DNA of 64,000 bases, from NCBI GenBank assembly GCA_004431415.1, contig QPMI01000520.1, forward strand, positions 310,001 through 374,000, read 5' to 3'. The stretch comes from Cyanophora paradoxa CCMP329. Lineage: Eukaryota; Plantae; Glaucophyta. Position 1 is the first letter of the stretch. Each line of letters starts with the position of its first letter. Positions 6,727 through 64,000 of this stretch are shown here, one piece after another. The notes beneath the pieces were generated by a model. That model did no database searches and was not told where the DNA came from. It was given only the letters and a program-made list of their open reading frames with translations. The position numbers and the translations under genes are program-made.

Positions 6727-6757
<31 letters not shown>

Positions 6758-7831: not shown

Positions 7832-7905
7832 CCCGAACCACGCCGAAGCGAACCCAAACACCACGTACCCGTGCCGCAGAAACTTGGCTTCAACTTGCAC
7901 ACGCA

Positions 7906-8534: not shown

Positions 8535-8605
8535 GATTCAATTCTCGAAATTCAGATGTACAGAGCACACGCCACCCTCAGCACAGAGGATGATTTGAAA
8601 TATGA

Positions 8606-10758: not shown

Positions 10759-11489
10759 CCTGGCTGACTGTCGTTTGGGCAAGTCACGATAAAATTTATT
10801 TTTCTCCTTGGCCCCGTGCACAGCAGCAGCCACAGATCGGTCGGCCTGCCTTCTTGTCGACGTCCCTGCTCCGGACGGCTGCTTCGGCTTGGCCCCACTG
10901 TCGCGCGGAGATGCGGGGTCCGCTCATCATCTTCCCTGCATCTCAGCCCCTCTGGCCCCGTCGTTTGTCGCTTCAGCTCTTGAACCCGCCAACAAATGCT
11001 GCCATGCTGCTTCATTGACAAGGCTATACTTAATTTCAGCAGGTAATAGTTAGCTTCCTGTTCTTCGTGTTGATTAACGATCAATTACTAGTTATTGTTG
11101 GTCGGCGCCGGCCCTCGAGCTCGATCGCGCCCCCCATTCCCTCTTAATTTCCGCATTGATTCCATGCGATTCCTCTGGGCATGCATATGGGCCCTCGTAT
11201 TGCAAGCAGGGGGAAGCTTAAGGCCCTGATGCGTTAAAGTATATTGCGGCTGGAATTCAAAGTCAATTAGACGCCCAGCGCCGCTGGGCGCGCTAAGGTT
11301 CCAAGCGACTAGACAGGAGGAGCACTGGCGCCGGCGCGGCCAACCAGGACTTCTCAGCCTCACGAACCCGAGGAGTCACAGCCCCTGAAGCCTCACATTG
11401 CGAACTCCAGCATCTCGGCAGGCTGAAACCAATCTGGTTTGCTTGAACACAAAAACAGAAGGCTTTGTCCTAAAGCTCGGTAATGGCCT

Positions 11490-12734: not shown

Positions 12735-13329
12735 CTTCGCTACTCTTTGTTTTCACCGACTGGGGGGGGGAGGAGACCACGGGGGGTACTGTCACGAAGA
12801 TGCAGCCATTACTCGCGCTTCGAATTCTCGGATCCGTTGCAGAGAACGCTACGTATACCATGCATCGTTCGCGTGGTGCGCAGAGCTAAAAGATACCTGG
12901 AGGCCTTCGCCCGCCAGCCTGGCGCACCGGCGGCGGCAGAACTCGGAACGCAGTGACTAGCTATAGCTATGGAATTCGAACGCGCCGCGCGCCGCGCCAG
13001 CGTAAGCGTTCGCTTTCGCAGGCGTGCGAAATCTTGCGCTCAGAGCCAGCGCTAGCGCGCGTCGCTCCGAGGCTCCGGCGCTGACTCAGTGATCCGGATC
13101 CACACGGGTGCTGCAGCACTAGTGCCGGCTGAGGCTGCCGAGGACGAAGCCTGATGGAAACAAGCAACTCAAACGCCAGCAGCGCCAATTGCTAGCGCTC
13201 AGCGGCTAGCCAACCATTGCAAATATCCGGAGCGCGGTACGTCGATACACGCACAAGTAAGCGATTAATAGCACTCACAAATTGCCATGTCCATGCGTAA
13301 AATACAAAGAGAAGGGGTTCTGTCGCGCC

Positions 13330-39494: not shown

Positions 39495-42400
39495 ATGACA
39501 GACGCGAGTTGGGCAGATGGAAGCGACATCGAAGCGAAATATCAAGCCTGCCACAAGGCCGCGTTCGCCCCAGCTGGCGCGGGCATTGCAGACTCCCCGC
39601 CAACGTGTACCCCCACTTCCGCCACAGTAAAAACAACGGTGCGGCCCGCCGGGCATTCGGCGCACGTTGTGTCTGTCGCCGTAGGCATAGTATCGATCGA
39701 TTTAGCCGAGCGAAAGGCGTCGCCCGCGTCCGTAACTGACCCGCCGTTGAAACTGCTGCCGGGCCGCAGGGGGTTGTTCTCGGTCTCGTCTGCGCATCCG
39801 CGTCAGACGGACCGCCTCAAAATGATGAACCTCGTTCGTCCTCCCGATTTCCGGGGCCGTGGCGGTGAGTTTAACTGCCTCCCTCGCAGCCGCTCAACGA
39901 GGGAGACTTTTCCACGGAGCCTTTGACCAAGGGTACCGGCACTGAGGTCCGCTCTCTTCCTATGCTCGTCCCCATTCTGAGGACTCACATCGTTCGCGCC
40001 TCCCGGACGGCAGGCACTTGTCTCGGTTCGCAACCACCATCTCGCCAGCATAGCCTCTCGTTCCTGAAGTCGTTTAATCGTGCATTGCCTCGAGCAGGGC
40101 GCCCTAAACTCGACTTCGCACATGGCGGCCGTGCGCCACCCTATCCGACTATCCGCTGCCTCAAGCGGCTGAGCGCACCCGCAGATGGTCGACTCTGCCA
40201 CGGCGACCGTGTCGGACTTCGAGGAGTCCGCCAGCGGCGGCTACTCCTCCGGCAGCGAGCTCAGCAGCGCCGACCTCGCCGTGCGCTCACCCGCAACCGG
40301 CCGGCCCGCCTCGCCGTGTGGCCGCCGACGTGCGTGCGCGCGCAGTCGCTCCCGCTCGGCGGCCCGGTGGAGGACGAGATCCCCGTCCCCGTGGCGTCGG
40401 CCCCGGTCTCGTCGAACGTCTTCGCGTCGCTGCCCCTCGAGGGCTACCACGAGGAGGCGGCCCCCGTCCCCGTCTCCCTCTGCGGTCCTTTCCCGACTCC
40501 TCCCCCCCTCGCCGCTCGTCTCGACCCGACCCGAACCGCACCGCAGGCAACGGCTTCGTCAACTCCGGCGAGGAGTGCGGTTCGTGACGCCGCTCGCCAA
40601 GTCACGCGCGGGTGGCCCGACGCGGCTCTCATGGCGCATTGCAGACGACGGGACGATGAACATCGGCCCCAACGGCGTCGCTACCCTCGTCAACCACTGC
40701 AGCACCGACTGCAAGGTCGCAATTTGTCCGCATCTGCGCCGCACGCCGCTTCTGACCCGGGCGCAGGTCATTGCCTTCTGCGGTGACGGCCATGTCAGCG
40801 GCTACGAGCAGTGCGGTCCGTCCTGTCTTGGCCCCGGCGTCGCCGTGCTCCGCCCCTGAGGCCGGCTGCAGACGACGGCAGCGCGAACGGCCCCGCCGTC
40901 GCCTCGTCCCTCAACTTCTGCAGCGCCACGTGCACCATCATGCCGTACTGTGCGCCGTCCCCGGATGCGCGTCGCGCGCCGTTGGTGACCGCTGCGTGCA
41001 GGCGGCGACGGCGTGACCAACGCCGAGCTGGGCGAGACCTGCGGTGAGCTTCCGGGCGCTTCGTCGCCCCGGTCGGCCCCGCTCACGCACGCACTCTCGC
41101 AGACGATGGGACGGACAACGGCACGAGCCAGTCCGTCAACCGCTGCTCCACCGAGTGCCGCGTCTCCGCCTACTGCGGGTGCCGGCAGCTGCCCTCCCTC
41201 TGTCCGCGCCTGCCGGACCTGACGCGCGCCCTCCTCCAGTGACGGTCGCGTCGACCCCCAGCTTGGCGAGACTTGCGGTTCGTCCCAGCAGATCGCTGAA
41301 GCTTTCTTCGCGCCATACTCACTTTTGCGCCTTGCAGACGACGGCCAGTGGAACGGTACCACTGCCTCGATCAACCACTGCTCCTCCAAGGTTTGTCCGC
41401 GATGCGATTCCGTGCGGTTGGCCTGGCTTTAACGCTCCCTCGCGTGCGCAGTGCGGCCCCGCTCCGTACTGCGGCGATGGCGTCGTACGCAATCTCCCCC
41501 CGCCCCTTGCTCTTGCCTGCTCTGACGCTGCCTTCGCAGGTCAACTGCCACGAGACGTGCGGTGCGCGCGGGGCCTGTCGAGGGCGACCCGGCCGCGGCG
41601 TCACACTCGCGCGCAGACGAGGGCGAGGCGCTGAACGGCAAGCCCGGCGGCCACTGCACGGCGGACTGCCAGGTCGCCGCCTTCTGCGGGTGCGCGGCTG
41701 CGTCGACGACGACTCGACCTGTCGCGACGCCTCTTGACTCGGTCGAGCAGTGACGGCAAGGTCGACGCCGGCGAGTATTGCGACGACGGCGCCCTCAACG
41801 GCACCGCCGCCTCGACCAACCACTGCAGGTGCGCTCTGCTCCGCATCACTTTCCGTGTCGTCGCTTACTCCGCCACAGCTCTTCCTGCACCATCGCCGAC
41901 TTCTGCGGCGATGGCCGCGTCTCCTCTGGCGAGCAGTGCGGTGAGCTCTCCTCCATCCGCTCCAGACGGACGACGTCGCTGACCCGCGCTCGAACGCGCA
42001 GATGACGGCGCGCTTAACGGCACGACCCAGAGCGTGAACCACTGCAACACCTTCTGCCAGGTGGTCGACTTCTGCGGGTGCGAGCGTGTGTTTTCGGGTT
42101 GCGCTGGCAGGCCCTCACCCGTTTGCCAGTGATGGCAAGGTCTCCGCTGGCGAGCAGTGCGACGCCGGCAACCTCAACGGCACCAGCCAGAGCACCTGCT
42201 CGGCCAACTGCACGGTGCCCATTTGCCAGGCAATCTGCGCCCCCCGCGTGCTGTCTCCTAATCGTTCCTCTTACCAGGTCATCAACTTCTGTGGCGACGG
42301 TCCGCGGGCTCGCCGACGCGGTTGCTCGCTCAGTTTGACGCTGACGCGCTTGCGCATGCAGGCAAGGTTGATGTCGGCGAGCAGTGCGGTGAGCACACGT

Positions 42401-45400
42401 GCGGCCTTCTGCTCGACGCACTCGCTAAGTGCCGTGGGCAGACGATGGTCAGCTCAACGGCACCACGATGGCCCCGAACCACTGCGACAAGACTTGCCAA
42501 GTGATGGACTTCTGTGCGCACGCCTTCGCAGTTTTGTCGCTGCACAAATAACCCCTTGCAACGAACAGGCGGCGACGGCAAGGTCACCGCTGGCGAGTTC
42601 TGCGACGATGGCAACCTGAACGGCACCAGCCAGAGCCACTGCTCGCCCCAATGCACCGTCATTGAGTTCTGCGGGTGCGACCGTGTGATTTTCATTGAAA
42701 CGGCGTACCCTCGACGTCTAACGTCGTCCTAGTGACGGCAAGGTCAGCGCTGGCGAGTCCTGCGACGATGGCCAGCTCAACGGCACCACCATGTCGCCGA
42801 GCCACTGCTCCACCCAGTGCACCATCATGGACTTCTGTACGTTTTCTTCCCGCCGACCTGATTCTCACATTTCTGACGACTGCCTCCTCCCGCAGGCGGC
42901 GACGGCAAGGTCTCTGCTGGAGAGCTCTGCGACGACGGCAACCTGAACGGCACCAGCCAGAGCCACTGCTCTCCCCAGTGCACCGTCATTGAGTTCTGCG
43001 GGTGCGACCGTCTGATTTTCATTGAAACGGTGTGAAACGGCGTACTCTCGGCGTCTAACGCCACGCTAGTGACGGCAAGGTCAGCGCTGGCGAGTCCTGC
43101 GACGATGGCCAGCTCAACGGCACCACCATGTCGCCGAGCCACTGCTCCACCCAGTGCACCATCATGGACTTCTGTACGTTTTCTTCCCGCCGACCTGATT
43201 CTCACATTTCTGACGACTGCCTCCTCCCGCAGGCGGCGACGGCAAGGTCTCTGCTGGAGAGCTCTGCGACGACGGCAACCTGAACGGCACCAGCCAGAGC
43301 CACTGCTCTCCCCAGTGCACCGTCATTGAGTTCTGCGGGTGCGACCGTCTGATTTTCATTGAAACGGTGTGAAACGGCGTACTCTAGGCGTCTAACGCCA
43401 CGCTAGTGACGGCAAGGTCAGCGCTGGCGAGTCCTGCGACGATGGCCAGCTCAACGGCACCACCATGTCGCCGAGCCACTGCTCCACCCAGTGCACCGTC
43501 ATGGACTTCTGTACGTTCCATTCTTGCCAATGTCTCTCATTCCTAACCCATTCACTTCTACCATAGGCGGCGACGGCAAGGTCTCCGCTGGCGAGCTCTG
43601 CGACGACGGTCAGCTCAACGGCACCAGCCAGAGCCACTGCTCCACGCAGTGCACCGTCATCGATTTCTGTGAGCAACTCTTAAAGCGTATCCTGCTCTCT
43701 TTTAAGTTGCGCTGTTTCTAATGCGCAATCCAGGCGGTGACGGCAAGGTCAGCGCTGGCGAGTCCTGCGACGATGGCCAGCTCAACGGCACCACCATGTC
43801 GCCGAGCCACTGCTCCACCCAGTGCAACATCATGGATTTCTGTACGTTCCCACCCTCCTATTTCGCTTTCTTTCGTGCCTCTTCTCACTGGCCGCTCTGT
43901 AGGCGGTGACGCCAAGGTCTCCGCTGGTGAGCAGTGCGACGACGGTCAGCTCAACGGCACCAGCCAGAGCCACTGCTCCACGCAGTGCACCGTCGTCGAC
44001 TTCTGTGCGGTTTCCATCGTTGGTCTCACGAATGACTGTCGTGTCGCTGATGCGTGTTCATCAGGCGGCGATGGCAAGCTCTCCGATGGCGAGCAGTGCG
44101 GTGAGCCATGCTCCTTCCTTTCGTTGTGCTGCTGGAGCACGCGCGCTCACCTTGAAGCGCGCAGACGACGGCCAGCTGAACGGCACCACCGCGTCGCCGA
44201 ACCACTGCTCGGCCACCTGCTCCGTCCTCGCCTACTGTGGCGACGGCCGCGTTGACGTCTCCAACGGCGAGGCTTGCGGTTCGCGCGCCCTGCGGTTTGT
44301 ATACGTTCTTCGCCGACGTTTCCACCCGCGCAGACGACGGCGCCCTCAACGGCACCACCGCCAGCCCGGTGCGTTCGTTGTAGAATCAAGTCTGCGTTCC
44401 GCATGTTGACTTCTTTCCTAGAGCCACTGCTCGTCGGAGTGCTCCGTCCTGCCCTACTGCGGCGACGGCGCTGTCAACGGCGCGCTCGGCGAGACTTGCG
44501 GTGCGTCTAGCGTGCATGGCCGTCGCTGCCGCCTGCCTCACTTCGCCGCCCTGTAGACGACGGCGCCTTCAACGGCACCGACGCGTCCCCGGTTTCGTCT
44601 TTGCTCCCCGCCTTGTGCTCGAGTTTTCCTGAGGCATCATCGCGCAGAACCACTGCTCGGCGAACTGCACCGTCCTCCCGTACTGTGCGTGCTCTTGAAA
44701 TCTTTGAAATCTTTACGCGTCAAGATGGAAGCGTCGGGCTGACGTTCGCCTCGTGAAGGCGGCGACGGCCACGTCGACGGCGAGAAGGGCGAGCAGTGCG
44801 GTCCGTTTGCGTCCCCCTCTTTTTCGGCCGTGTTCCGGCCCTGATCTCGCCCGCAGACGACGGCTCCGATGAGAACGGGTCGCCCACCAGCCCGGTACTG
44901 CCTCGACGCGCCACTCGCCGTTTGTCCCATCTGACAGCTCGAATTCCACGCAGAGCCACTGTTCTGCTGAGTGCACGGTGATGGCCTACTGCGGTGACGG
45001 CCAGGTCAACACCGGCAACGAGGCCTGCGGTGCGCGGCTCCCCGTTCGCATCGCGTGACGTCACGTCGCCGCCCTCACGCGGGGGCAGACGATGGCTCGC
45101 TCAACGGCACCCCGGGCTCGCCGAACCACTGCTCGGCCCAGTGCACCGTCATCGACTTCTGCGGTGACGGCCGCGTCACCCTCGGCGAGGAGTGCGGTGA
45201 GCTGAACGGCATCGCTCGTGTTGGCGCCGACGCCGTTCTGACTCCCGGCCGCCCACCGCGCAGACGACGGCGCCTTCAACGGCACCAGTCAGAGCCACTG
45301 CTCTCCCCAGTGCTCCGTTCTGCCGTACTGCGGGTGCGAGCCGCTAGCGCGCGGCGGGCGTGCGCGGGGCCGGCGCCCTCACGCGGACAGCGCAGCGACG

Positions 45401-48400
45401 GCCACGTCGACCCCGACGGCGTTGACGGCCCGGAGGAGTGCGACGACGGCGCCGCCGTCAACGGCACCGACGGGAGCCCCGTGCGACCTACCCGACGCGA
45501 GGCCTTACCCCACATCAAACCGTCTTGCTCACTGCATCCATTTTGCAGAACCACTGCGGCCGCGACTGCCAGGTTGTCCCGTACTGCGGCGGTGAGTGCT
45601 CTCCTCACTCCCGCGCTTCCCCACGCCCGTGTTGAGACGCGTCGCAGACAACATGGTCAGCCCGGGCGAGCAGTGCGGTGAGCGGCTTCTCAGAAATGCG
45701 TCCCGCTGCGCCCCCTGATCGTCCGAACGCAGACGATGGCCAGCTGAACGGCACCAGCAACAGCCCGGCCCACTGCTCGGCCCAGTGCACCGTCCTCGAC
45801 TTCTGTTCGCTCAAAGTTCCGCTCCGTGCAGCACGCGCGCCTGACGCCCACTCGCAGGTGGTGACGGCAAGATCTCCGCCGGCGAGCAGTGCGGTGAGCA
45901 AGGACGGCGCCGGTCTCGCTCTGCGCCCGACGCACGCCTTACGTGCGCGGCGCGCGCACGCAGATGATGGCGACTACAATGGCTCCGCCCTCTCGCGCTC
46001 CCACTGCTCGACCGAGTGCACCGTGATGCCCTTCTGTGCGCGCTGGAGCTGCGCCTCGACGCGCGCTGTCTCACTTGTCTCTTGACGCCGCCTCCGCTGC
46101 TCCACAGGCGGTGATGGCCAGATCAACGCCGGCGAGCAGTGCGGTGAGAGACGCGAACCCCGAACCCGGGGCCGCCGCAGCCGCCGCCGACTCACGCCGT
46201 CCCCCCCGGCGCAGACGATGGCGCCTCGAACGGCACGACCACGTCGGCGAACCACTGCTCCTCGCAGTGCGAGATCCTCCCGTACTGTGCGTCGCCGGCC
46301 CCGCCTCTCCCGCCTCGTGCCGTGACGTCGAGGGCGGCGGCGGGCAGGCGGCGACGGCAAGGTGACGGCGAGCGTGGGCGAGGAGTGCGACGAGGCGGGC
46401 CTCAACGGCACCAGCGCCAGCCACTGCAGCGACGCCTGCAAGGTCCTCCCCTGGTGCGGCGACGGCTTCGTCAACCAGGCCTCGGGTCCGCCCGCCCCGC
46501 ATGCCCCGTGCCCACCGCCTCGCTCACGCTCGCGCGCGGCGGCGGCTCCGCAGAGGAGTGCGACGCCGGCGAGCTCAACGGCCAGGAGGCGGTCCACTGC
46601 GACGCCACCTGCCAGGTCCGCCCCGCCCCGCTTGCGTCCCCCGTCGCCCGCCCGCCCAGCGCCCCTCACGCCCCCGCAGATCACCCCATGGTGTAAGCCC
46701 CGCGCGGCCCCGGCGAGGCTGCACCGCCCCTGCCCCGGCTCACGGTCACGCTCGCCCGCGCAGGCGGTGACGGCATCGTGAACGCCGCCAACGAGCAGTG
46801 CGGTGCATTGCATCCTGCGCTGGCGCGCCCGCCGCGTTGCTCGGCGTCTCACGCGCGCCGGAAACAGACGACGGCGGCGCGCTCAACGGCACCCCCGGCT
46901 CGCCGAGCCACTGCAGCCAGGAGTGCCAGATCCTCCCCTACTGCGGCGGTGAGTCGTGCCTCTGTCCGCCGTTCGCGCGCGCTGAATGGCTCATGCCGCT
47001 GCAGACAACACCGTCAACCCCGGCGAGCAGTGCGGTGAGCACCGTGTAAGGGATGCGCGCGCGCAGGGTACGCTTACGGCGCGCCTGCAGACGACGGCGA
47101 CCGCAACGGCACGGGCGACAGCCCGAACCACTGCTCGACCGAGTGCACCATCATGGCGTTCTGTGCGCCCCGCAGCCGTCTCGGACGCACCACACACCGC
47201 CGGCGCTCACGCCGTCCGCAGGCGGCGACGGCAAGGTCAACGCTGGCGAGTCCTGCGATGACGGCCAGCTCAACGGCACCGCTGCCTCCCCGGTCCGCCT
47301 TTGCCGTTGTCCCGCCCCTGGTTGCGTTCCGCCGGCGAGCGGGGCGGGGCGCAGACGCACTGCAGCGACGCCTGCCGCGTGCTGCCGTTCTGCGGCGACG
47401 GCCGCAAGTCGGCCGGCGAGCAGTGCGACGACGGCCAGGACGTCAATGGCACCGACGCGAGCCCCGTGCGCCCTGTGCCGCCCGCCCGCCTCCGCCGCCG
47501 AGCTCGGCGCCGAGGTGCCTCGCGGGCAGAACCACTGCTCGGCGGACTGCACCATCCTCCCGTTCTGCGGCGACGGCGCCATCAACCTGCCGAGCGAGCA
47601 GGTGCCGGAGCCGCCGCCCTCGCCTTCCCTCTCGCATCGGCCCTCGTCCGCTGAGCGCGGGGCGGCAGTGCGACGACGGGCAGCTCAACGGGAGCGCCAT
47701 GTCGCCGAACCACTGCAGCCTCACCTGCGACGTCCTCCCGTACTGCGGCGACGGCGCCGTCAACGCCCGCTCCGAGGAGGTCCGCGCGCCCGCCCCGCCC
47801 CCCCGTCGCCTGCCCCGCCGCTCAAGCCGCGCAGTGCGACCTGGGCAACATGAACGGCGCGGTCGGCACCGCCTGCTCGGCCACCTGCAAGACCGTCTAC
47901 GTGCGCTCGCCCGCCCGCCCGCCCGCCGCCCAGCACCTCAACGCATCCGAACGACAGGTCCCGGAGTGCGGCAACGGCATCGAGGACGAGGGCGAGCAGG
48001 TGCGGCCGAGCGGCCCCGCGCCGGGTCCGCTGTCGCCTTTGACCGCCCTGGGCGCGGCTGCAGTGCGACCTGGGCAGGAGCCTGAACGGGGCGCCGGACT
48101 CGGGCTGCTCCAAGGACTGCCAGAAGGTCTACGTCCCCAAGTGCGGCAACGGCATCCGCGACAACGGCGAGGAGTGCGGTGCGCGGCGCCCCCGCGCCCC
48201 TGCCCCCGGCACGGCAGCGGAGGCCTGACGGCGGTCCCGCCCGGCCGGCCAGACATGGGTGTGCTCAACGGTCACGAGGGTGCCGCCTGCTCGGACAGCT
48301 GCACCAAGCTCGAGATCGTCGTCTGCGGTGCGCGCCGCCCGAATGGGTTGTACTCCACGCTGAGCATTTAAGACTATCCACACCACACCAAGGCCACATC

Positions 48401-49340
48401 TATAGAGCGGCTATCTATAATGTCCCACTACACCTTGCGCTTAACACTGCAAAAATTGAATGTTCTTGCTGTGATCTCTGATCTCACTCTACGGGGCCCG
48501 TCGCTGACGCGCCTGCCCCGCAGGCAACGGCATCCTCGACGCCGGCGAGCAGTGCGGTGAGCGGGACCGGCGCTTTCCTCGGCTGCGGCGACGCTGACCC
48601 CGGAGGGGCGCAGACGAGGGCTTCGAGAACGGCAAGGCGGGCAGCAGCTGCACGGAGTACTGCACTCTGCCCGTGCAGACGTGCAACGTTTGGTGAGTCG
48701 CGTTTCTCCCAATAAACGCGACGAACGTGCACTCATTCCGACGGCAGCAACGCCTGCAACTACCACCAGGTCGTCGCCCCGGTCATGGCCTGCCCTGCCC
48801 CCACCTACGGCCGTGCGCCCGCCGTCCCCCGGACCGGCCCCCGCGCCACCCGCCGCGTGCCCAACGCCGTGTGCAGGCTTCACGGCGTCGAAGGGGCGGC
48901 TGCTGCGCGTGGTGCAGAGCGAGCAGGAGGGCACCGAGGAGTGCCGCTTCGCCGGCTCCCTCGACTCGTACCTGGTGAGCTCGCGCCGCCCGGGATCCCC
49001 CCCGGGGCGGCCTTGCAAGTGAGGTGACCCTTGGCCCCCTCGCGGAAGGAGGCGATGGGGGAGGAGCTCTCGGGCGACCTCCTCTTCGCCGCCGCGCCCG
49101 CCGCCGCCGACGCCGCGCACCTCTCCTTCGTGCGCCGCGCCCCGCGCCCCTCGCCTCGCCCTGCCGCCGGCCCCTGCAGCTGACACGGCCCCGCGAAGGC
49201 GGAGGGCGTGCTCGAGGAGGACGACTTCGCGGCGGCCGCGGACGAGGAGGCCGAGGCCTTCCCCGTGCGCCCCGCCCCGAGCCCCTGCGCCCCGCCCCCG
49301 CCTCAACTCTTCCCCCGTCGCCGCCCTGCAGGCCCTCTGA
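39495..49340 (+). CDS. Giant Cys-rich repeat protein B (DUF4215-like, ~39 repeats by hand count), dozens of introns; 5' end approximate
   Basis: Tandem units (F/Y)CGDGKV.AGE.CDDG.LNGT...S.HCS.QC.V split at recurrent intron positions. Acidic tail EELSGDLLFAA...EEDDFAAAADEE; probable stop at 49338-49340. Confidence 0.82.
42729..43518 (+). repeat. 337-bp tandem duplication (two exons plus two introns per unit), ~2.3 copies
   Basis: Units start at 42729, 43066 and 43403. The first two are nearly identical including introns (one substitution seen by eye). Confidence 0.92.
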
Positions 49341-51892: not shown

Positions 51893-52433
51893 TAGTACGC
51901 GTGCATGACGGTGCATCGATATCGATATCACGGTGCATGTGACGGTCCGACAGTCGGAGGGTCGTTGGTACGTATACCGGGTACGTTACCGGCGATCATG
52001 ATCAACTTACCGCCGGTCAGCTGGCCGCAGTACTGTAAACGTAGAAATGTTCGTCGAGACTTAATTTCGACAAAACCCGAAAATCGTGACGAAAATATGG
52101 TTCGACCGTCGGACAGCATCAAATTTTCGTCAGCCACGCGACTCCGCCATAGAAGGGTCAGCCGTTAGTACCCCTCTCCAAACAAAATTGCAGTTCAAGA
52201 GCATATCAAATATTCGTCAAAGTGCAGGACTGACGAATATAGACGAAATAAAACTAGTGGCCGTACTAGTACCCCGGTGCGCCCTGTCTGTCAACGTTAC
52301 AATATTAATTAGACCAACTTATCTTTGTTCATATATATGAACTGATAGCTATATAGCCGCTGAGCTAGCTATAGGTAATCGCGATCCGATGATCGAACGT
52401 ATCCGTAATGCATATGAACATTAAAATACAAAA

Positions 52434-52527
52434 CAAGATCCGTGCTCCTGCGGAGCACTAAGTACGGCGAAGCCTCGCGGACGCCCTCATGGCTGTCACA
52501 CTAGGCCTAGCGCACCGGCCAGCGGCC
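52434..52527 (-). mobile_element. Helitron-like 3' terminus, copy 1
   Basis: On the minus strand: perfect hairpin GTGCTCC-GCA-GGAGCAC, then GGAT-CTTG|T. Similarity with copy 2 stops at this end. Confidence 0.5.
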
Positions 52528-53904
52528 GGCCCGGCCGGCCCGGCGGGCCGATCGTGAACAGCGCTGGCCCGGGCCGGGAAGCTGGCGGCCAGCTGCAGCC
52601 CCACTTGTACTGGCCCGGCCAGCTAGAGGAATATGAAGGGGAGGGGTACCGGTTGGACTGGCTTTTAACTGGTGGAGCAGATTGAGAGCTCGAGGAGATT
52701 AATTGCAAGGGGGGGTCAGCTGCTCAAACCCCCCTTGCTACCCGTCGGATTGTCTGTCACGCTGTCCAAGTCGGCCAGTTCGCAAGTCGGTCTTTTTTCC
52801 GTCGGCGATAAGTCTTTTTGTGGTACCCCGCTGTGGATAAGGCCGGCGCCGCCGGACGTCTCTTTTTGCTGTATCCCGCGCAAGGCTCCTTGTCGGCGAG
52901 TTGTCGCCGCCGCTGCGGCGCCGACGACTTGCCGGCGTACTACTACGGTAGTTGCAATTGCCGCCCACGCAACCGCGATGTGCCAGCCTGCAGCTGCACT
53001 GCACTGCGGCAGCATGCACTGCTTGCAGAGCGCAGCTAAGCATAATCGCCGAGTCGCGCGCGCCGCGTCGCGCCGCGCGCGCGCGCTCCGCTCTGCCGGC
53101 GCGCGAGCCGCGCGCGCCACCGCCCTCGAGCTCCCCTGTCCGACGGTCCCGCGGCCGCGCCTGGCCCGCGCGGCCCTAGCTGGACTCAGTGGACATGTCG
53201 CCCTCCGCTGCGCATGCTCGGCTAACCCGGCCCAGGCGCGGCGAGCGGGAGTGCGCAGCGGCCGGCTGCGCGACGCGAGGCCGGCGCCATGCATATGACG
53301 GGCGGGGCGGTCGGGCAACGGTCGGCGCGGCTCGCCAAGCGGGACGGAGCCTCGGAGGCGCGACGCGCGCTCGGCAGCTCAGCTGCGCGGCAGGCGGCGG
53401 CGCGGCTCGGCAGGCGGGACGGGGGCGCGGTGGCGGCAGCGCGCCGCGGCGGCTCGGGGCGCGGGGGCCGCGCGGGGCGAAGGCGCGCGCGGCGAGCGGG
53501 GCGGCGGCGCAGCTCTCCGGGCACCGGCGCGCGGGCGGAGGTGCGGGCGGCGGTGCGGTCCGCCGGGCGGGGCGGAGGCACGGTGGGCGGCCGCGCGCAG
53601 GCCCAGGCCTAGCCGCCTACGCCTATAGCTAGCATTATACTTAGTTGTATAGATAGTCGCTGAGCATTCAAATGATTACTACCGTTGAAGTTACTTAGTT
53701 GTTGTATTCTGTCAGCGTCCCTACTTTAGACCCCACCTTGCACCTCCTGAGACGAGCGGGGGCGGGGGCGAGTCGAAGACCTAGTTATAAAATATTGTTG
53801 GGAGGGAGGCCCGGGAGGGGCGAGGTTCTCGTGGCCAGGCGCATGCACAGAGCTTGGGAATCGCTTAAACAGAACCTAGAATGCATATAGCATCGATGTG
53901 CAGG

Positions 53905-56900
53905 GGTGCGGAGGCAAGGGCACGCGGAAAGCTGTGCAGGCCTGGCCAGGATCGAATTTTAATTTCGGGGTCGGCTGGATTGCCACGCCCTGTCGCGCCC
54001 GCAGAGCTTGCGAAAAGCTTTCAAAAGATCTCTGATAAATATTGTAGCGTTTTCCATACATGAGGACGCGAGGGCGCGCGGAAAGCTGCACAGGGCTTCA
54101 AAACCCCATTTTTCGTCCGGAATCGCGAACGCAGTCTCCCCCCCTCGCCGAATTGTTCCCCCCTTCAGCTCTAGCCTCAGCGTTAAGGCACGGCGACGGC
54201 GACCTCCACGCCATCGCCTCTTGCTCTGGCAGCGAGCAGTATTGCCTAGCTAACATCGATCGGACGGGTCCTCGCTGCCCGAGACCGCCCGGCTCGCCCG
54301 CTCGCACAGGAATCTCACGCCAGCGAGCCTCAAGACAGCGGCGCATCCGTGGCGTCCAGCGACCTGCCGGCATGACCAGCACTCTTTCCGGACGTAGTAC
54401 AGGACTTTCGGGCCCGTCAAGCGCGACCGGCGGCACTGTGGCGCATCTCGGGCGCGGAAGCTAGGAGCGACTCTCGGATCTCTGGGCGCAGCTCGCCGGC
54501 AGGTGTCTTTCCTGGCTTCTCGATGCATATCTATCCTCTGTATGCGATGTGAGCCGCCCGCGCAGGGTCGTTGTGTTGGGACGGAGGGGTGCCTCCCGGC
54601 GGTCCTACACCTGCCCCACCAACGCGGCGCCGCTCATCCCGTATGTGTTCCAGGGCTCTATCATCCATGTGCGTACCTCTTCTAGCGGTCGTGGCTCGGT
54701 TCCGCTCACGGGAAGCGGTCGCGCGCCCCAGATCAGTTTGCCCCCATCGCGTTTCGGTTGCGCCTCGCTCTTCTCCGACGCCATGTGCCTCTAGCGGTGC
54801 GCCAACACTTTGCCATGCATGTTTACTATCCGCGTGCAAGCCCTGACCCGCCGCCGCGCAGCGGGTGGCGCGCCCGGCCTCGCCGCGCGAAGGGGGGGTG
54901 GTTCGCGGACCGCCGACCTGGAAACTGAGCCCCGCCGCCCGGAAGTGCGTTCTTCTCTTTCTATATGTTAGATATAAACTATGCGCGCTGCCCCCCGGCC
55001 CAGGCGCTGCGCTGCGCGTCCCTAACTCCGCACCACCAGTTAGAGACCTGCAGCCAGTTCACCACCACGGCGCCCACGGCATGTCTCGGTGCGCTTTTAC
55101 GGTATGAAACCACTTCATTGTCGACATAAGCTGGCTAAACTGCCGGGATGCAGCGAGCGCCGCCGGAATGGCCAAGATGACCGCCATGGCACCTCGGCTC
55201 CTTGCTTCCCTGGTGCGCTCGCCGGCCGCTTGTCGCTGTTTCTGGCTTTGCTGATCGATGCGCATGTAGGCCGCGCGCTGTCGGTGGCGGCGGGGGTCCG
55301 CCGCTGGCGCAGTGGCTCACACCTGCTCGAGCGCCACCGGGCAAATGCAACCAAAACGAGCCCGGCCTCTGTCGTAGACGAGCACAATGTTAGCCTCGCA
55401 TCATTATAAGAGATCGTTCGATTCGTGTTGTGCAACCTCGATCATGCTAGTCTGAGGCGCTGCGTGCGGGATCGAATCGAACGAAGTCTAGCAACAACGT
55501 GAGCAAGCGAAAGCTGCCGAGAGAGCCGCCGTTGCTGCAGCCGAATGTTGCATTTGCGTTTGTATGGGCGGCTACACGTACCCCCCCTTCGTTCGCCGGA
55601 CGATTTTGGGCTTTTTGAAGCCCTGTGCTGTGCAGGACCGTCCAGGATCGAATCTTCGAGGTCGGCTGGGTTCTCGCGGCCCGGCACATCTGTAAAGCGT
55701 GCGGAACGCTTGATCTACATCTTAGATGCTTATGCTATTGTTCTGCGCATCCGCCGCGGCGTGGGCGCGCGGAAAGATGTCCGGGTCCGTGCAGGATCGA
55801 ATTTTTGCCGTCGGCTGGGTTCTCGTGCTCTTTCGCGTCTTCGAAGCTTGTGGAAGGCTTTGATAAACTCTCAAATGAATACTGTAGCGATGCGCATGCG
55901 CAAGGATGCGAGGGGGCGCGGAAAGATGTTCAGGTTTCTAGCTATAGAGGATCGAATTTTCGGGGTCGGCTGGGTCCCCGCGGCCCGGCGCACGTGCAAA
56001 GCGTGCGGGGTGCTTCTTCTACATCTCAAATGCTTATGCTATCGTTCCGCGCATGCGCCGCGGCGTCGGCGCGCGGAAAGATGTCCGGGCCCGTGCAGGA
56101 TCGAATTTTCGCCGTCGGGTACCTTCCTGCGCTATTCCGGCTCCGAAAAGCGGATATTTGGATTGCGCAGGATCTGCTATGTCTATGCGCGCCAGTACGC
56201 ATCGATTGCGCGCGTCGCGGGACCGGCCGGAACCGGCCGGATCAAATTTTCGGCCTAGGCCTACTGTTCGGACTGCAGCGTCGAGGGCGCCCGAAATCGA
56301 GCTTGCGGCGATGCGCTCGCCCTCGCGCGTCATTCTGTATCGTTCTGGGGCGTCCCTGGCGCGATTCCGTCGCGGGACCGGGCGGGACCGGGTCGACGTC
56401 CCACCTTCTGATTCGGACTGCGTTTGTCGGAGGTTATAATTAAGTACCGGAATTGATCCAGAGGGAAATTCGATTTTCGCGCGACGCCCACGGGAGAGCG
56501 GTCGTCTTAGGGGAGCCAGGACGCTAAGAATGGATCTAGAGAGGTTTGTGGGGGTTCGGGGAGCTGTGTGATTTGTGTGTGATGGGGGAAGCGTCACGTC
56601 CGTGTCGAGGAAAAATTATTAATTTTTCACGAGGAGGCTGCACAGGGAGAGGATTTGCATTAGCACACAACAACAACTACTAGGAGTTTCACATCGCCCA
56701 ATTTATCTCTCCGACTAGATAACACTGAGGACCGTCGAGTGCTGTGCTCTGTCTAAGTGATGAGAAATTCTATCTACGTCCTATATCTACAAATGGGGCG
56801 AGAGGCCGAAAGATACACCTGCAGAAAAAGCCCAGCGCCCTACGCAGACCGATGAAGGCAAACAGAGCGCGCAAACACCCTCCAGACATGGAAGTCCGCC

Positions 56901-58158
56901 CTAGGGAAGACCCACGTATAGCGGAGGGCAAGAAAGGCACTACGCCTGACAAGCAAAGGTCGACGGAAAGACCTGAGCTTCCCTGCATGTGGAAAAGACC
57001 CGCCATCTAGCGACTCGACTGCGAGGAGATGAGGAGCGGAACGAAATGAGAAAGCGCCGATGAGCTCCAGCGCCAAGCAAGGGAGCGGGGCCGGGCGCCG
57101 TCCGCGTGTTGACGGAACACGTCGCCGCGCCAGTGTGCCACGCCAAGGCTGCCGCGCGTTCACTAACGCTGCGGCGCGTGGCGGCGTGGGCTTTGCGCGA
57201 AAGCCGGCCGACTTTGCGGCCAGCCGACGTCGCCGCGGCCGCTCCCGCGGCGCTCCTCGCCGCGCCGGAGACAACATAGAAGCAATCCCCTAACGCGCGC
57301 GCTCCTGAATCTCCTACGGAATGGCCGGCAACGAGGCCCGCCGCCGAGAACGCCAACTCGACACCCATTTCGCGCCGCCGCTCGGCGCGCCAGCCGCCTA
57401 CCTCACGCTGGTCACGCTGAGCGACAGCGGCGGCGCCATGGACGGGCCGCAGCCAGCCGCGCGCCGACGCGGTGGGAAATTTTCTCGTACCCGTCTCCCG
57501 GAGGCTGCACAGGGAAATTATTTACAGGGGAGATGAAAAGTTTCGGGTTCGAATCCGACCGGAATTTGGCTCGTTGTTGACCGGGTTTGAGACAAGATCC
57601 GTGCTCCTGCGGAGCACTAAGTACGGCGAAGCCTCGCGGACGCCCTCGCGGCTGTCACAGTAGGCCTATAGGGCACTGGCCAGCGGCCTGGCCGGCTACC
57701 GTATATATAGCTGGGCCACCGGGCTGGCTCGTACGCCAGAGCCTCGGACGGCGTTCGAGAGCTGGCCCGGCTCCGGACCCCCCACGCCGGTGCCACGGTG
57801 CCCCGCTCGCACAGCTCTAGAGTAGGTTGAGCGCACTGGGCCAGTTCAGGTGGCGCAAGGGAGCGAGACAGTTGAGGAGCGAGTCCAGCCTAGCGAGTAC
57901 ACACGTAATATTTATTCGAGTTGATTGAACAAGAAGTTTCAATCTGCGCGATAGTAGCTACGCGCATGCGCGAGAATGCGAGGGCGCGCGGAAAGATGTT
58001 CAGGTCCGGACAGGATCGAATTTTCGGGGTTGGCTGGGTCCCCGCGGCCCGGCGCATTTAGAGACCGTGCGGAAGTCGTCTTCTACATCTTAAATGCTTA
58101 TGCTATCGTTCCGCGCATGCGCCGCAGCGTGGGCGCGCGGAAAGATGTCCGGGCCCGT
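53905..58158 (+). repeat. ~150-bp degenerate repeat family (GCGCGGAAAGATGT...AGGATCGAATTTT core), tandem at 55625-56120 and 57970-58158, diverged copies at 53905-54100
   Basis: The core GCGCGGAAAG recurs at about 55767, 55917, 56070, 57985 and 58135. Alternating A/B subunits give a ~300-bp higher-order period. Confidence 0.8.
57593..57688 (-). mobile_element. Helitron-like 3' terminus, copy 2
   Basis: About 55 bp identical to the 52434 copy, with the same hairpin and CTTG|T end. Confidence 0.5.
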
Positions 58159-58441
58159 TGTCGCATCCGACATTATAGCGGATGCTCGTTTGTGAGCCGC
58201 TAGGGTTCTAGATGATGTGCGCAGCCTTCGTGCTGCTAGATCGACGGCGCCTAGGCTAGTTAGAGCGCCGCGGTCACTTGTATGCGTGTGTCGGGGTACG
58301 CCGTAGCTGGACGGGTACACCCTCAGTCTACCATCCCGGTGGCTAACAGCAGCAGCACTCGCCAAACCCCGCCCTGCCGAGCTTGCACTCCGCACGGGCT
58401 TCCCGCGCGCACGATTAGACATACTAATCTCGCACGCGACA
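58159..58441 (+). repeat. 5' LTR (283 bp)
   Basis: Begins TGTCGC and ends GCGACA (6-bp inverted termini). Flanking repeat similarity breaks at 58159 and a PBS abuts 58441. The second LTR is not in the window. Confidence 0.75.
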
Positions 58442-58459
58442 GGCGCCACTGCCGGGAAT
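58442..58459 (+). promoter_or_regulatory. Primer-binding site, tRNA-Asp-like
   Basis: GGCGCCACTGCCGGGAAT directly after the LTR resembles the Athila-type tRNA-Asp PBS TGGCGCCGTTGCCGGGGA (recalled). Confidence 0.65.
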
Positions 58460-58520
58460 TTGATCGAGCTTGAGCTCTCTTTTACAACGCGCCCCCGGCC
58501 TCTTCCCCCTCCGTTCCGAA

Positions 58521-58593
58521 ATCCCGTCCGCGGGATCCGAACCGGGGATCTTGGCTCGTAGAGCAACAGCTCTACCAACTGAGCCAAGAGGGC
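58521..58593 (-). ncRNA. tRNA-like sequence (degenerate, anticodon unassignable), copy 1
   Basis: GCCCTCT-TGGCTCAGTTGGTAGAGC...GGTTCGGATCC...GGACGGGA: intact D-arm/A-box, B-box with G at position 58, mismatched stems. Confidence 0.6.
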
Positions 58594-58706
58594 CGTTCCG
58601 ATGTGAGACTCGCGTCTCGGCGCCTGGTGCGCCACTGCCGGGAATTTGATCGAGCTTGAGCTCTCTTTTACAACGCGCCCCCGGCCTCTTCCCCCTCCGT
58701 TCCGAA

Positions 58707-58779
58707 ATCCCGTCCGCGGGATCCGAACCGGGGATCTTGGCTCGTAGAGCAACAGCTCTACCAACTGAGCCAAGAGGGC
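58707..58779 (-). ncRNA. tRNA-like sequence (degenerate), copy 2
   Basis: Identical to copy 1. Confidence 0.6.
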
Positions 58780-59266
58780 CGTTCCGATGGAGCGCCATTC
58801 TGCCGGAATCGAACCTTCAAGGGTCGCTGGACTTCCAGGCTCTGCCCGCGCCGCGCGCCTCGCCGCGCCGCCTCGCATAAGCTTAAAGAGATCTGGGACG
58901 AGCTTTCCGGGCGACCGCCACTTGTGGCGTGCTACGCTGCACACTTCGGCCGCGTCGCCTCTGGGCGGGCTGATTGTGCTTCGGAAGTGACTCTAGTGTC
59001 CCTCGCGGGCTTCGGTGCATCCCCAGACCGAAGCGCACGCACGAGCTCTCGCGAGAGTCTCAATCATTGTCTGTGTCCCTTCGCCGGTTGCACGCTTCGC
59101 GTCGCACACTGTGCCCCGGAGTCTGCCAGCGGCAGTTCTCTGAGTGTCCCTGAGTCGGTTCTCGCACGCCACGAGAAGACCGTGTCCCGGATCTGCAGTG
59201 CGCTGCAGATCAAATCTTGTGCCCTGGCATTCTGTTCTCGTGGCTATACGCTGCAAAGAGAGCAAT

Positions 59267-62200
59267 ATGTCGAACACTTCTGAACTGATCAGTTCTGAAG
59301 TCCGTAGCCAGCTGTCCGCACTTGCGCACGTTGAGCCTGCGAAGGCCGAACTTGCTGTGCAGCTCGCTGGCACCGCCGCTGCGGCGGAGGATGATCCCGC
59401 GCGGATCGCCTTCCTCCCCGCGAAGCCGCGCCTCGCCGACGGTGACCGGTTCCGGAAGGATGTCCGGAACTTCCAGTCGGCTCAGCCGACGAAGTATCTC
59501 TTTGGCCCGGACACTGCCGGCGGCCAGGAGTATACTAAGTCTGAGGCGCTTGCCGGAGTGATCGTCGGGCGCATCCGCCCCGGCGCCCTCCGCGCCGAGA
59601 TTGAGCGTAAGCGCGACCTCTATGAGGCCTCTATTGCTGGCCTGGAGCGTGACCGCGCCCTGCTCGCTCGTCTCGAACTTGTCCCGGCTGATCTGCGGAC
59701 TGCCGAGGATGAGGCTGCAATCTTGGCGCTGCAGCAGAGCTGCGCGCGCGATCATGCCACTATCGTGGCCGTGCGTGACTCGTACTTGCGTGCCCCCGGG
59801 CTCCTCGCGACGATCACGGCATGGATTCATGAGACGCGCCCGCACGCGGCCCGCCGGGCTCTCACTGAGCCCTACACGGGCGAGGACCCGCGCTCATGGC
59901 ATGACTGGTTCATGCCCCTAGTGCAGCACACGCTGCCCCAGGGCCAGCGCCTCGCCGTGTACTATGCGGAGTGTCTGCGCACTGCGCTCGAGGCCCGCTC
60001 GACGAGCGAGGACCCGGAATATCAGAACCTCGATGTTCGGATGGCCGGGTTCGCCCAGGCGAACGAGCGCACTCTGCGCGCGTTCCTCGCCGCGCTGCAG
60101 CAGCGCATCCTTGCACAGGACGGCGCCCTGTCGCCGCTCCAGCTCGACGAAATCTTCGTCGCAGCGTGCAAGACGCACGGCTGCCGCACCGTGCTGCCCC
60201 CCACGGCCACGGCCGCACTCGAGGCGCCGGAGGCTAAGAAGCCCCGCGTGCGCAAGCTGGCGCCGGTAGCGGCCGCCGCCAGCGACGACGACGGCGACGA
60301 GCCCATCGAGGCCGTGCCCGTCAAGTCCGTCAATGCGGCCCCGGGCACGAAGGCTCCGCAGGGCGCGCCCGTCGCGGGTCGCCGGCACCCCGACGAGGAG
60401 CGCCTGGGGTACCCGAGCACGACCACGTCCCCATGCCCCCTGTGCATGCACGTGGAGATGCCGGCCCTCGACCGCTGCCACTTTACGTGGAACTGCGTGT
60501 GGGGCACGGCCCCCTTCCCCAATATCCCATACTCCGAGTGGGTGAAAGGGATTGCGGATAAGCGCGCGCGGCGCCGCGATCGGCCGGCGCGCGAGGAGGA
60601 TGCCGCCGATGAGCGCAGCGAGCCCGGCCCGACCCGCGGCGGGTTCTCGCACCGCGGCGGGCACCGCCAGGAGCCGTACGCCCGCGGCGGCTACCGCAAC
60701 GACCGCGGCGGCTTCGGCCGGACCGCGGCGGCGGCTACAGCCGGGGCGGCGCCACCCGCGCCCCTGCCTCCGGCCCGAACCAGCGCCCGCTGGGGAAGGG
60801 CAAGGAGAAGAGCGCCCAGGACGACCGTGAGCCGGGCTGCTGGACCTGCGGGTCTCTGGACCACATCCGCCGGGACTGCCCGGACGCTGAGTCACAGGGC
60901 CGCGGCGGACGCGGCCGGGGCTACGGCCAGGACATGAACCGCGGGCAGCGGCCCCGGTTCAACCAAGTTCGCGCCGAGAACGAGCCCCGCTCTGACTCGC
61001 CGAACTCGGCCGCCATGGCTGCATTCTTCCAGCACCTGCAGGCGATGCAGCAGCAGGCCGCCCTGCACGAGAGCGCGCGTGGCGCCAGCTCCTCGTCTGC
61101 AGGCGGCAACCCGAACGCCGGCGCCCCTCCGGGCGGCCCGTCCATTCGGTCGCTGTCTGTGATGCCCGTGGGCACGGATTCCGACTCGGACGAGGCTGCG
61201 GCCGTTGCAGCGGTCCGCCAGCCGTCCGACGCCCTCGCCATGGCCGCCAAGGCGCGCGACCAGGCCGCCTTCGATGCCGCTGCGGCGGACATCTCGGCTG
61301 GCGCCCTCGACGATGCCACTCGCGAGGCTGCGTTCGAGCGGGACCTCCGCTGCGCCAACCCGGCCAGCGAGGACGGCTCCGGGGAGTCCGAGCTTGGGGA
61401 GAGCGACGCCGAGCGGCTCGACACGGACTCCGAGTCCGCCCCGAGCTCCGACCCTGGCCAGGGCTCCGCGCCCTACGCCAGCGACACCTCGAAGCCCGCC
61501 CATTTCGGGCCGTTCGGTTCTCCGGACCGCGACGTGCCCCAGGCACCACCCCGGTGCTCCACGAAGTCGTGGGCACTGGATTACATGCCGTATGACCACG
61601 TGCCTGCCACGGACGTGGAGAAAGAGGGCGAGCGCGAGGGCGGGCCCTACTTGCCCCGCTACGTGAGCCCGGTGCTCATGCCGCTCACAAAGTGGTACGC
61701 CCACTTGACGGCCAAGCCCCGTGACCTAGAGCGCGCCATTGGGCTGCTCTTCACGAACGGCCTCGACGACGCGAAGCAGACGCTGCTCGTTCGCGAACTC
61801 GCCCAGGAGGGCCCGAAAGGCATAGTCCTTGACCGGTTCCTGGGGGCCTGCGGCCTGCGGCGCCCCGAGCGCCTGCTGCTGGGTCGCCTGGCTCACCGCA
61901 CCGAGGCTCACTCCCTCGCCTGCGTGATCGAGGCTGCGGCGACGATCGCCAAGCTCGATTACCGCCTCCAGGAGGGCCCCGATTCGAGCATTGCGATGCT
62001 CGCAATCCGCGGTGCCCAACTCAGCCACCCCGTCACCAAGTGCTCGGGTATTGGCTCGGCCCCTGATCCTGAGGATCTTTGGCCCGACGACCCCAATGAG
62101 CTCGACGTCGCCTCGCTGAAAGCTTGGGACGACATGCTCTTGTCGTGGGAGCGGCACGCGCCCGCCTCGAACGTCTGGGGCCTCGCCTCAGACTCGAGCG

Positions 62201-64000
62201 CACTGCCGGACAGCGAGCGTTTACCGCTGCTATCCCTGCTCATTTCGTCGGCGTACCTGCTCGCTCAGCCGGGCCTGAAATGGCCGGGGATCCAGCACCT
62301 GCAGGTCGAACCAAACGGCGACCCGCGGTTCGACATTACGCCCGACGGGAACGTCTCCCGTACCGTGACGGGCTACCACGCCATGCGCACAGCGCTCGCT
62401 GCGGCTCGCGAACTCCTCGACGAGGATTCCGACTTCCACGCTTACTGCGTGCAGCTTGTGCTTGCCATAATCCGTTTCCGGACCCTTACGGTGCTGCCGG
62501 GCGCACTCGGATTCGAGAAGGGCAGCCTTTTCGCGTGGATTAGCCCTAAGGACGTGGCCCCGCCACTGTCGCTGTTCCAAACATACACGGAGCGGCTGAC
62601 TGAGGTTGCCGGAGCCACGTGCTTCGACACGCGCGCCAAGGGCACCGTCCCCGAGCGCGTTATCGCCATGCAAAACAGCCGCCGCGCTCGCTGCATGGCC
62701 GGGGAGCCGCCGCTCGTGAACCTGTCCGAGCTGGTGCAGCACGGCTCAGACCTTGAGGGTTCCGGGCCATCAAGTTGCTCCCCCGCGTCGCCGTGCGCCG
62801 CCTGGCCAGGATCCTCGACCTGCGCCGCCCCACGGAGTTCAGCAGCTTGCTGTTCTCCGACTGGCTCATGGGCCTGGGGACCTATCACGCCGCCCCCACG
62901 GTCGTGGTAGACAGCCCCGTCGGCCCCGGCGAAGGGCTCCGGTTCCGGGAATTCCCGAATGCCGACCCCCTCATGCTTGGACCGAGTGTTGAAGCGTTTT
63001 ACGATCGCTCCTACCCGATCACTCGCCGCGGGCGGTGCTGTGACTACGATGTCATTGAGCTGCTGGCATCCCGCACTGTCCCCCGTGAGGGCCGTGGCCC
63101 GCTCCCTGGCGGCGTCCGTGACTCGAGCGAGTACTCATGGCTCGTGAACGCCCTCCACGGCGAGTTCTCTGCCGCGAACCGCTGGGGTGAAATGCACCGT
63201 AGCATTTTCACCTGGGTTTGCTACTGCATCTCGCAGTCCGGCGTCCGCGCCGTTGCTCTGCTCGAAAAGCCGCGCGACCGCGTGCGCTTGATGCTGGGCG
63301 AGGTACGCCGCCGCTTCACGGCCAAGCGCTCGCACCGTCCGGTCTGGGATGAGTTCGATGACGACCTCCAGACCAGCGACCGCATGGCTCGCGAGGTCGC
63401 CGAGCGTGAGGCCGCCGCCGGCCGCCGTGGCCGCGGCAAGGGCAAGGTCGACGAAACGACCTCTGCCGCCAAGCCCGCTCGCACCCGCGGCACCAGCCGC
63501 CGGCCCGCCCCCGCCAAGCCGGCAAATGCCGAGGCCGAGGGCGAAGGGGAAGCGGAAGAGGGCCCCGGCACGCCCTCTCCTGACCCCATGGAGTCCGATG
63601 AGAGCGCTGGCGTCGACAACGACACGCGCGAGAGGATGCGGCACGCGCTCTTTGTCCGTGCGGGCATTGACGCCCACCTCTTCGAGCTCATCGGCTGCCC
63701 CAGCCCCTCTAGCCGTTGGCCGACTCAGGTCGAGCACATGTGGCTCGCCAACAGCGGCCTGCAGCCGGCTCAAAACCCGGTCACGCTGCACATCGCTCCC
63801 GACCCGGAGCTCGCCTCCTGGCTCGAAGCTGAAGCGGCCCAGCCGCCCTGGCGCCGCTTCGCCTGGTTCCATGAGAACCCCGACCGCCCCAGTGGGAGCG
63901 GCTGGAAATCGTCATGCCGAATCGCCACCCGGCGAACATTCGCATGCTGAAGCGCGCTGTCGCTTCCTTCGAGCTCGCCGCCTCCAGCGCCGGCTTGCTC
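59267..64000 (+). CDS. Very long intronless Gag-like polyprotein, interrupted by three apparent frameshifts (~60720, ~62757, ~63885)
   Basis: ATG 59267, coiled-coil N-region, CPLC..H..C motif and RGG repeats. The zinc knuckle CWTCGSLDHIRRDC (60838-60879) lies in the frame of ORF 60934-62910. Coding-like sequence continues across each frame switch. Confidence 0.7.

Follow-up and report, generated by a model that had tools for sequence, protein, structure and literature searches.

Ty1 and Ty3, two retrotransposons with long terminal repeats (LTRs), show extended or multipartite tRNA complementarity beside the primer-binding site (PBS), and in retroviral reverse transcription the primer tRNA is copied into plus-strand strong-stop DNA. 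To our knowledge, no LTR element encodes a separate primer RNA. Tf1/Sushi, Tcn1 and TAR prime themselves, the 5' end of the transcript being complementary to its own PBS (PMC6317226). The non-autonomous LTR elements grouped as TRIMp3 (Cassandra, Helenus and Ajax) carry an RNA polymerase III (Pol III) promoter derived from a tRNA or 5S RNA (Kojima 2024, PMC10886601); this small-RNA piece lies inside both LTRs in sense orientation and is thought to drive transcription of the short element, which measures 0.3-1.3 kb and lacks open reading frames, and a primer function for the tRNA-like piece was raised but rejected because it lacks complementarity to the PBS (PMC10886601). Tandem arrays of Cassandra are reported as an example of repeats within LTR retrotransposons (PMC7215508). 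Here we analyzed 64,000 nucleotides of the glaucophyte Cyanophora paradoxa CCMP329 (contig QPMI01000520.1, positions 310,001 to 374,000 of the forward strand; hereafter the window), in which positions 58442-58815 form the first part of the internal region of a gag-type LTR retrotransposon that is young and multi-copy. A sequence-only reading had proposed that this leader interleaves three PBS-like sites with antisense tRNA-like Pol III genes and may encode its own primer. We favor, with a probability of roughly 0.6, the more ordinary explanation that the block between the LTR and the family's PBS is a structural by-product of replication, carried in the plus-strand leader RNA and having no dedicated role as a primer gene.

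A duplicated unit and a resident primer-binding site

The order of features first described for this leader (PBS1, an antisense tRNA-like piece, a hairpin, PBS2, a second such piece and PBS3) was confirmed, each feature lying where it had been placed. Positions 58443-58603 and 58629-58789 are identical at 161 of 161 bases and repeat with a period of 186 bases, so that the three-site leader amounts to one unit, duplicated, together with a resident site, and its features are not independent of one another. The repeat block sits between the 283-bp LTR (58159-58441) and the resident tRNA-like PBS (58792-58815); the insert separating these two comprises 349 bases, or 1.9 tandem copies of the 186-base unit, and is flanked on the left and on the right by the same 6 bases, GCGCCA. 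Four parts make up each unit: a copy of the primer site in variant form, a tRNA relic of 72 bases that lies on the minus strand, a linker and a 25-base spacer with a small hairpin.

On the plus strand, the variant copy of unit 1 (PBS1, 58442-58459) abuts the LTR and reads GGCGCCACTGCCGGGAA from 58442; it lacks a leading TGG. The leader does contain a tRNA-like complement with a T-loop motif. The spacer (58604-58628) contains the hairpin (58605-58618, GAGAC/GTCTC), which has a folding energy that is not significant (-15.5 kcal/mol, z = -1.2), followed by GGCGCC and then TGGT. This TGGT and the variant copy of unit 2 make up PBS2 (58625-58645), with 15 bases from the TGG to a loop-like heptamer. 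PBS3 (58788-58815) begins with TGGA and from 58792 onward is the resident site. The first 17 bases of the unit are similar to that resident site, sharing GCGCCA, CTGCC and GGAAT with two small indels. Beyond this primer-site string the likeness between the unit and the resident leader was no better than that of shuffled sequences, and the same was true of the spacer compared with the LTR end and of the tRNA relic compared with either primer-site segment. A protein search with the translated cassette gave no match, and an exact-protein look-up of the minus-strand open reading frame (ORF) across the cassette returned no record. The tandem junction was recovered in contigs spanning 58443-58658 in runs X4 and X17 and 58459-58658 in run X1, indicating that the tandem arrangement is not an assembly artefact.

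The block is also an optional one. Contigs of the DNA runs X1 and X4 and of the RNA run X15 join 58442 directly to 58792, omitting the 349 bases, and GCGCCA fits both sides of the joint. Most copies of the family therefore lack the cassette and the family spreads with the resident 25-base site directly behind the LTR; PBS3 is this resident PBS, and PBS1 and PBS2 are parts of the insert. The contig depth at the cassette-free junction was 3332 in X1, 595 in X4 and 13 in X15, that of the cassette was 1271 in X1 and 205 in X4, and that of a likely single-copy flank (about 57670-57947) was 283 in X1 and 43 in X4. Read roughly, these values put the junctions without the cassette at a dozen and the unit equivalents at four to five in each genome, contig depth being a poor measure of copy number. 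Since the cassette is missing from most copies, it is dispensable for transposition.

The spacing within the primer sites was compared with that of tRNAs, in which CCA and T loop are separated by 13 bases in the standard form and by 14 in selenocysteine tRNA. The distance from the CCA complement to the T-loop-like heptamer is 13 bases in PBS1 (if AGG is read for TGG), 15 in PBS2 and 16 in PBS3, and spacings that range from 13 to 16 imply that the inner sites are not straight copies of a tRNA end. The cassette-free form gives 14 bases from the CCA complement to the T-loop complement (with the last A of the LTR read as T), with G as the discriminator. PBS3 had been described as complementary to a tRNA 3' end up to a perfect T loop; an exact complement of the consensus T loop does stand at its end, but the distance is 16 bases rather than 13. 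Moreover, the TG of the TGGA that opens PBS3 consists of the last bases of the unit itself (CCGATG also closes unit 1), which makes the CCA complement at PBS3 partly a coincidence. ARAGORN at default settings found no tRNA gene in the window, Rfam gave no match over the resident-site region, and metagenomes scanned with the complementary sequence of that site yielded one chance match in a non-tRNA context. Separately, the 14 bases of the cassette-free form equal the selenocysteine-tRNA spacing, and selenocysteine tRNA was considered as a candidate primer; glaucophytes retain tRNA-Sec (PMC13578239).

These sites could alternatively act in cis, as a feature of the plus-strand leader in which the extra sites bind tRNAs, provide alternative starts for minus-strand synthesis or absorb silencing 3' tRNA fragments. 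We regard such a role as unlikely. Three primer-site-like stretches do lie in sense orientation in the leader, the cassette-bearing leader is found in RNA contigs, and 3' tRNA fragments are reported to target PBS sequences (PMC7472051, PMC12853362). Against this, most copies manage without the block, the spacing of PBS2 and PBS3 is not that of a tRNA, and the identical units provide no variation from which selection could be read.

The arrangement is more readily explained if, while reverse transcription was under way, homology between primer sites allowed the unit to enter the leader through recombination or template switching, for which co-packaged RNAs of related elements or the second strand transfer would offer occasions. 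An exchange at primer-site homology would account both for GCGCCA at the two borders and for the primer-site-like start of the insert. The number of units would then have been shifted by mis-annealing between primer-site copies, in a very recent duplication; this step would generate the perfect identity of the units as well as the presence/absence polymorphism. The backwards tRNA piece, in turn, would be an older insertion of a reverse-transcribed small RNA, an orientation that is expected when plus-strand DNA synthesis copies an RNA.

The same borders could also be attributed to a tRNA-derived retroposon resembling a short interspersed element (SINE), inserted backwards in the PBS with GCGCCA as its target-site duplication and duplicated afterwards. 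The 6 bases that recur on both sides of the 349-base insert are compatible with this origin, as is the minus-strand order of a tRNA-like head, body and tail; for Helenus, Ajax and Cassandra, an origin by insertion of a SINE has been proposed (PMC10886601). We nevertheless consider a SINE quite improbable here, because the first 17 bases of the insert resemble the sequence to the right of the insertion point, which favors a homology-driven exchange over a target duplication, because, by DNA depth, the genome seems to contain only four to five equivalents of the unit rather than a dispersed family, and because the cassette motifs occur nowhere else in the window.

The antisense tRNA relic and the question of Pol III transcription

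The decayed tRNA copy begins after about 60 bases of the unit and occupies 72 bases of the minus strand at 58522-58593 in unit 1; its counterpart in unit 2 (58708-58779) is identical. The A and B boxes ascribed to the cassette are present at tRNA spacing: box A (TGGCTCAGTTGGTAGAGC, 58569-58586) and a box-B-like motif (GGTTCGGATCC) lie on the minus strand at tRNA positions of about 8-25 and 52-62, respectively. Box A is exactly of the consensus type, and the box-B-like motif agrees at 10 of 11 positions, with a single mismatch at position 58. The box-A motif occurs in the 64 kb only at the two unit sites, compared with an expectation of 0.04.

Whether these pieces deserve to be called tRNA-like genes, as was suggested, is a matter of degree, since the likeness to a tRNA is real but weak and falls short of detection thresholds. 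ARAGORN called no tRNA at the relic under default thresholds; the threshold had to be lowered to 80%, or mitochondrial mode chosen, before it drew a 72-nt cloverleaf, with mismatched stems and an anticodon of TAC/ACG. The broken pairs number 2 of 7 in the acceptor stem, one in the T stem and one or two in the anticodon stem. The Rfam tRNA model scored 12.9 bits (gathering score 29; E = 2.7), and did so only when 106 bases were searched alone; its alignment gives a different and equally imperfect acceptor pairing, and no tRNA was reported at the gathering score or at E<=10 on 651 bases. The minimum-energy fold of the relic is one long hairpin (z = -4.0) and not a cloverleaf, because the anticodon arm is the reverse complement of the D-arm side.

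The relic in unit 1 is bracketed by a 9-base direct repeat, CCGTTCCGA, at 58511-58519 on the left and 58593-58601 on the right (plus strand), and the corresponding pair of unit 2 lies at 58697 and 58779. A bracketing 9-mer arose in 119 of 200000 shuffles (p about 6e-4). On the minus strand the relic terminates in TT ahead of the 9-base repeat. The relic looks like what remains after a small RNA, once reverse-transcribed, was inserted a single time long ago. The alternative offered by the sequence-only reading, repeated captures of tRNA, thus holds for an inserted tRNA piece, as suggested by the bracketing 9-mer, but not for the repetition, since the two cassettes stem from one recent duplication.

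A more far-reaching reading makes the cassette an antisense Pol III gene, whose tRNA-like head would drive a minus-strand RNA through the complement of the primer site; the product would prime its own element, regulate the leader in antisense or trigger RNA interference against it. Pol III entry is conceivable, since on the minus strand a consensus-type box A and a box-B-like motif stand as far apart as in a tRNA. The TGGT ahead of PBS2 is the complement of ACCA. There is also precedent for small-RNA-derived promoters in non-autonomous LTR elements, where transcription has been shown for Cassandra and inferred for Helenus and Ajax (PMC10886601). That such an RNA would be complementary to the PBS says nothing in itself, given that every antisense transcript complements the DNA it was copied from, and the relic's own 3' end is complementary to none of the three primer sites. 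Behind the relic the minus strand offers only TTT, and the first T4 is reached at 57536-57539, about 1 kb downstream. The acceptor-like stem, with its three G-U pairs, did not survive comparison with shuffles, as the 56-base 3' part that contains it folds no better than they do (z = -0.48); for the 165-base unit as a whole z is only -2.0, and the hairpin accounts for that value. The CCA-like end has no T arm beside it and hence no minihelix like those on which RNase Z and the CCA enzyme act; spacings of 15 and 16, moreover, do not suit a tRNA. With a head that folds as a hairpin rather than as a cloverleaf, a CCA complement before PBS3 that owes its TG to the end of the unit, and a cassette that most family copies lack, we judge the antisense Pol III gene very unlikely, and the claim that the element encodes its own CCA-ended primer is not upheld.

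The RNA evidence over the cassette consists of assembled contigs, which carry neither strand nor transcript ends, and X15 is presumed to be an RNA run. A contig of run X17 covers the tandem junction (58443-58658) at a depth of 10.5, compared with 12-21 over the LTR and 4 over the leader in the same run. A contig of run X15 covers 58428-58586 (159 bases) at a depth of 192, reaching from 15 bases inside the LTR end across PBS1 and on through the unit as far as box A; the bins to its left and right have a depth of about 13 or nothing. The cassette is thus transcribed or co-transcribed, and these two contigs cover it together with the tandem junction and the LTR end, respectively, as a leader transcript would. 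The X15 contig stands alone, with nothing else from that run over 58364-58427 or 58587-58795, and neither of its ends falls where the known forms of the sequence would lead one to expect a branch point. Its right end falls 8-14 bases short of the expected Pol III start, a position that is compatible with a minus-strand RNA; the contig could equally be a fragment copy carried within some other, highly expressed transcript. It could thus reflect a discrete and abundant RNA, perhaps a minus-strand one from near the head, or such a fragment copy, in which case the assembly graph would break at the borders of homology. Caution is warranted with this data set, which is highly fragmented (mean contig about 48 bases). 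That the cassette is a working minus-strand Pol III unit, acting as primer or antisense regulator, and that the X15 contig is its RNA, strikes us as highly improbable.

Several points weigh against our view of the block as a by-product of replication carried passively in the leader RNA. In X15 the depth of the cassette contig exceeds that of the leader contig without the cassette about 15-fold (192 versus 13), the reverse of the ratio in DNA, and a contig that stands alone is not what a passive leader segment predicts. Box A and the near-consensus box B are still intact enough for Pol III. At the right junction the unit end is followed by GA and then by the resident site; because the 25-base spacer is missing there, this junction cannot be called a clean homologous crossover. 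Which element donated the unit, and in what order the events took place, is inferred, and the weakness of contig depth as a measure of copy number counts here as well.

The host element and its neighborhood

That this is the leader of an LTR retrotransposon, as first proposed, is well founded, given an LTR with TG...CA ends and a 6-base inverted repeat upstream and a gag with a zinc knuckle downstream. The 5' LTR (58159-58441, plus strand, 283 bp) starts with TGTCGC and ends with GCGACA, which form its 6-bp terminal inverted repeat. Contigs of several runs leave the sequence of the window just to the left of 58159 and just to the right of 58442, and the DNA depth of the LTR is high and variable, as for a multi-copy sequence. 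All 24 runs listed bear a single organism label. The ends of four RNA contigs, two of them from X15 (records 10 and 11) and two from X17 (records 19 and 20), fall at 58270 or 58271. Judged from these contig ends, this position is probably the poly(A) site and the border between R and U5, which would assign 58159-58270 to U3 and R and about 171 bases to U5.

The coding region begins with a gag-like ORF at 59267-60721 on the plus strand, which matches the sister gene models P0003 and P0001. Against residues 1-449 of P0003, all 442 aligned residues are identical (442/442), and against P0001 all but three are; 36 gag residues of the window are missing from both models. Pfam gave no match on this ORF. 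A continuation in another frame (60727-62910, plus strand), located by tblastn with P0003, contains a CCHC zinc knuckle at about 60838-60879 followed by a domain of unknown function. The zf-CCHC domain was found in the sister models P0002 and P0003, and the C-terminal domain of this second ORF was assigned to no family by Pfam or the ESM Atlas. The sister gene models run in one frame through the knuckle into the domain of unknown function, and the sister contigs have one extra G behind 60719. The frame break at 60719-60727 in the window copy could represent a broken copy, an assembly slip in the G run or a frameshift site. Homologues comprise at least 12 gene models on 10 contigs, all of them eukprot 'tig...' models, and three are 99% identical to the query; exact-protein look-ups of P0001 and of the two window ORFs returned no record. 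In the 4.7 kb of coding sequence that the window contains, Pfam detected neither a reverse transcriptase nor an integrase or protease domain. The element is at least 5.5 kb long and extends past the window end at 64000.

Upstream of the element, a repeat of about 150 bases with GCGCGGAAAGATGT occupies 53824-54094, 55629-56118 and 57950-58158, the last of these abutting the LTR. Its DNA contig depth in X1 reaches about 180000, compared with about 283 for the flank, which points to a satellite or a repeat of very high copy number. The stretches 52433-52535 and 57592-57696, 5.2 kb apart, form a direct repeat of 105 bases with 91% identity. Between 57200 and 57500, just upstream of the repeats, X17 RNA contigs reach depths of 4000-13000, suggesting a strongly expressed host gene or exon. 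Further away, 41100-48600 holds a long array in which at least 20 modules, diverged and each about 75-170 bases in length, code for cysteine-rich repeats (C-D-D-G, L-N-G-T, H-C-S); the modules are separated by intron-like GTGAG...CAG borders and probably belong to a large repeat-protein gene.

Significance and comparison with known systems

If the ordinary explanation holds, the locus provides a clean natural example of a PBS acting as a recombination point, at which leader segments can be gained, lost and multiplied from one round of reverse transcription to the next and at which copies of small RNAs can become fixed in retroelements. The description should be of use in annotating glaucophyte repeats and in avoiding false calls of tRNA or Pol III genes; a wider importance would follow only if the minus-strand RNA were real. 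A paper on small RNAs of C. paradoxa contains nothing on these elements. As far as our searches show, a tandemly duplicated block that includes the PBS is apparently undescribed in the literature, and it remains a structural variant of known things.

The closest system is TRIMp3, which resembles this locus in that an LTR retroelement contains the decayed copy of a small-RNA gene with box A and box B. In contrast to TRIMp3, the relic here lies in the leader behind the LTR and in antisense orientation, in a gag-bearing element of at least 5.5 kb, and is missing from most copies. Membership in TRIMp3 was rejected, as the relic is outside the LTR and on the minus strand and the element encodes gag. 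Tf1/Sushi, Tcn1 and TAR are a precedent for a primer supplied by the element, by a route other than the proposed minus-strand RNA. Self-priming of the Tf1 type was likewise rejected, since the longest complement between the PBS and the LTR spans 7 bases (at 58246), six of which are the palindrome GGCGCC, and about 11 are needed.

The locus resembles Ty1 and Ty3 in having tRNA-complementary plus-strand sequence directly downstream of the LTR, and differs from them in that its pieces fit no single tRNA (spacings of 13 to 16), the relic differs from the tRNA of the PBS type, and the block is tandemly duplicated. Finally, like the Cassandra arrays, the leader contains recombination-prone repeats whose number varies between copies. 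Unlike in those arrays, the repeat unit contains the PBS itself, so that each round of reverse transcription can gain or lose units.

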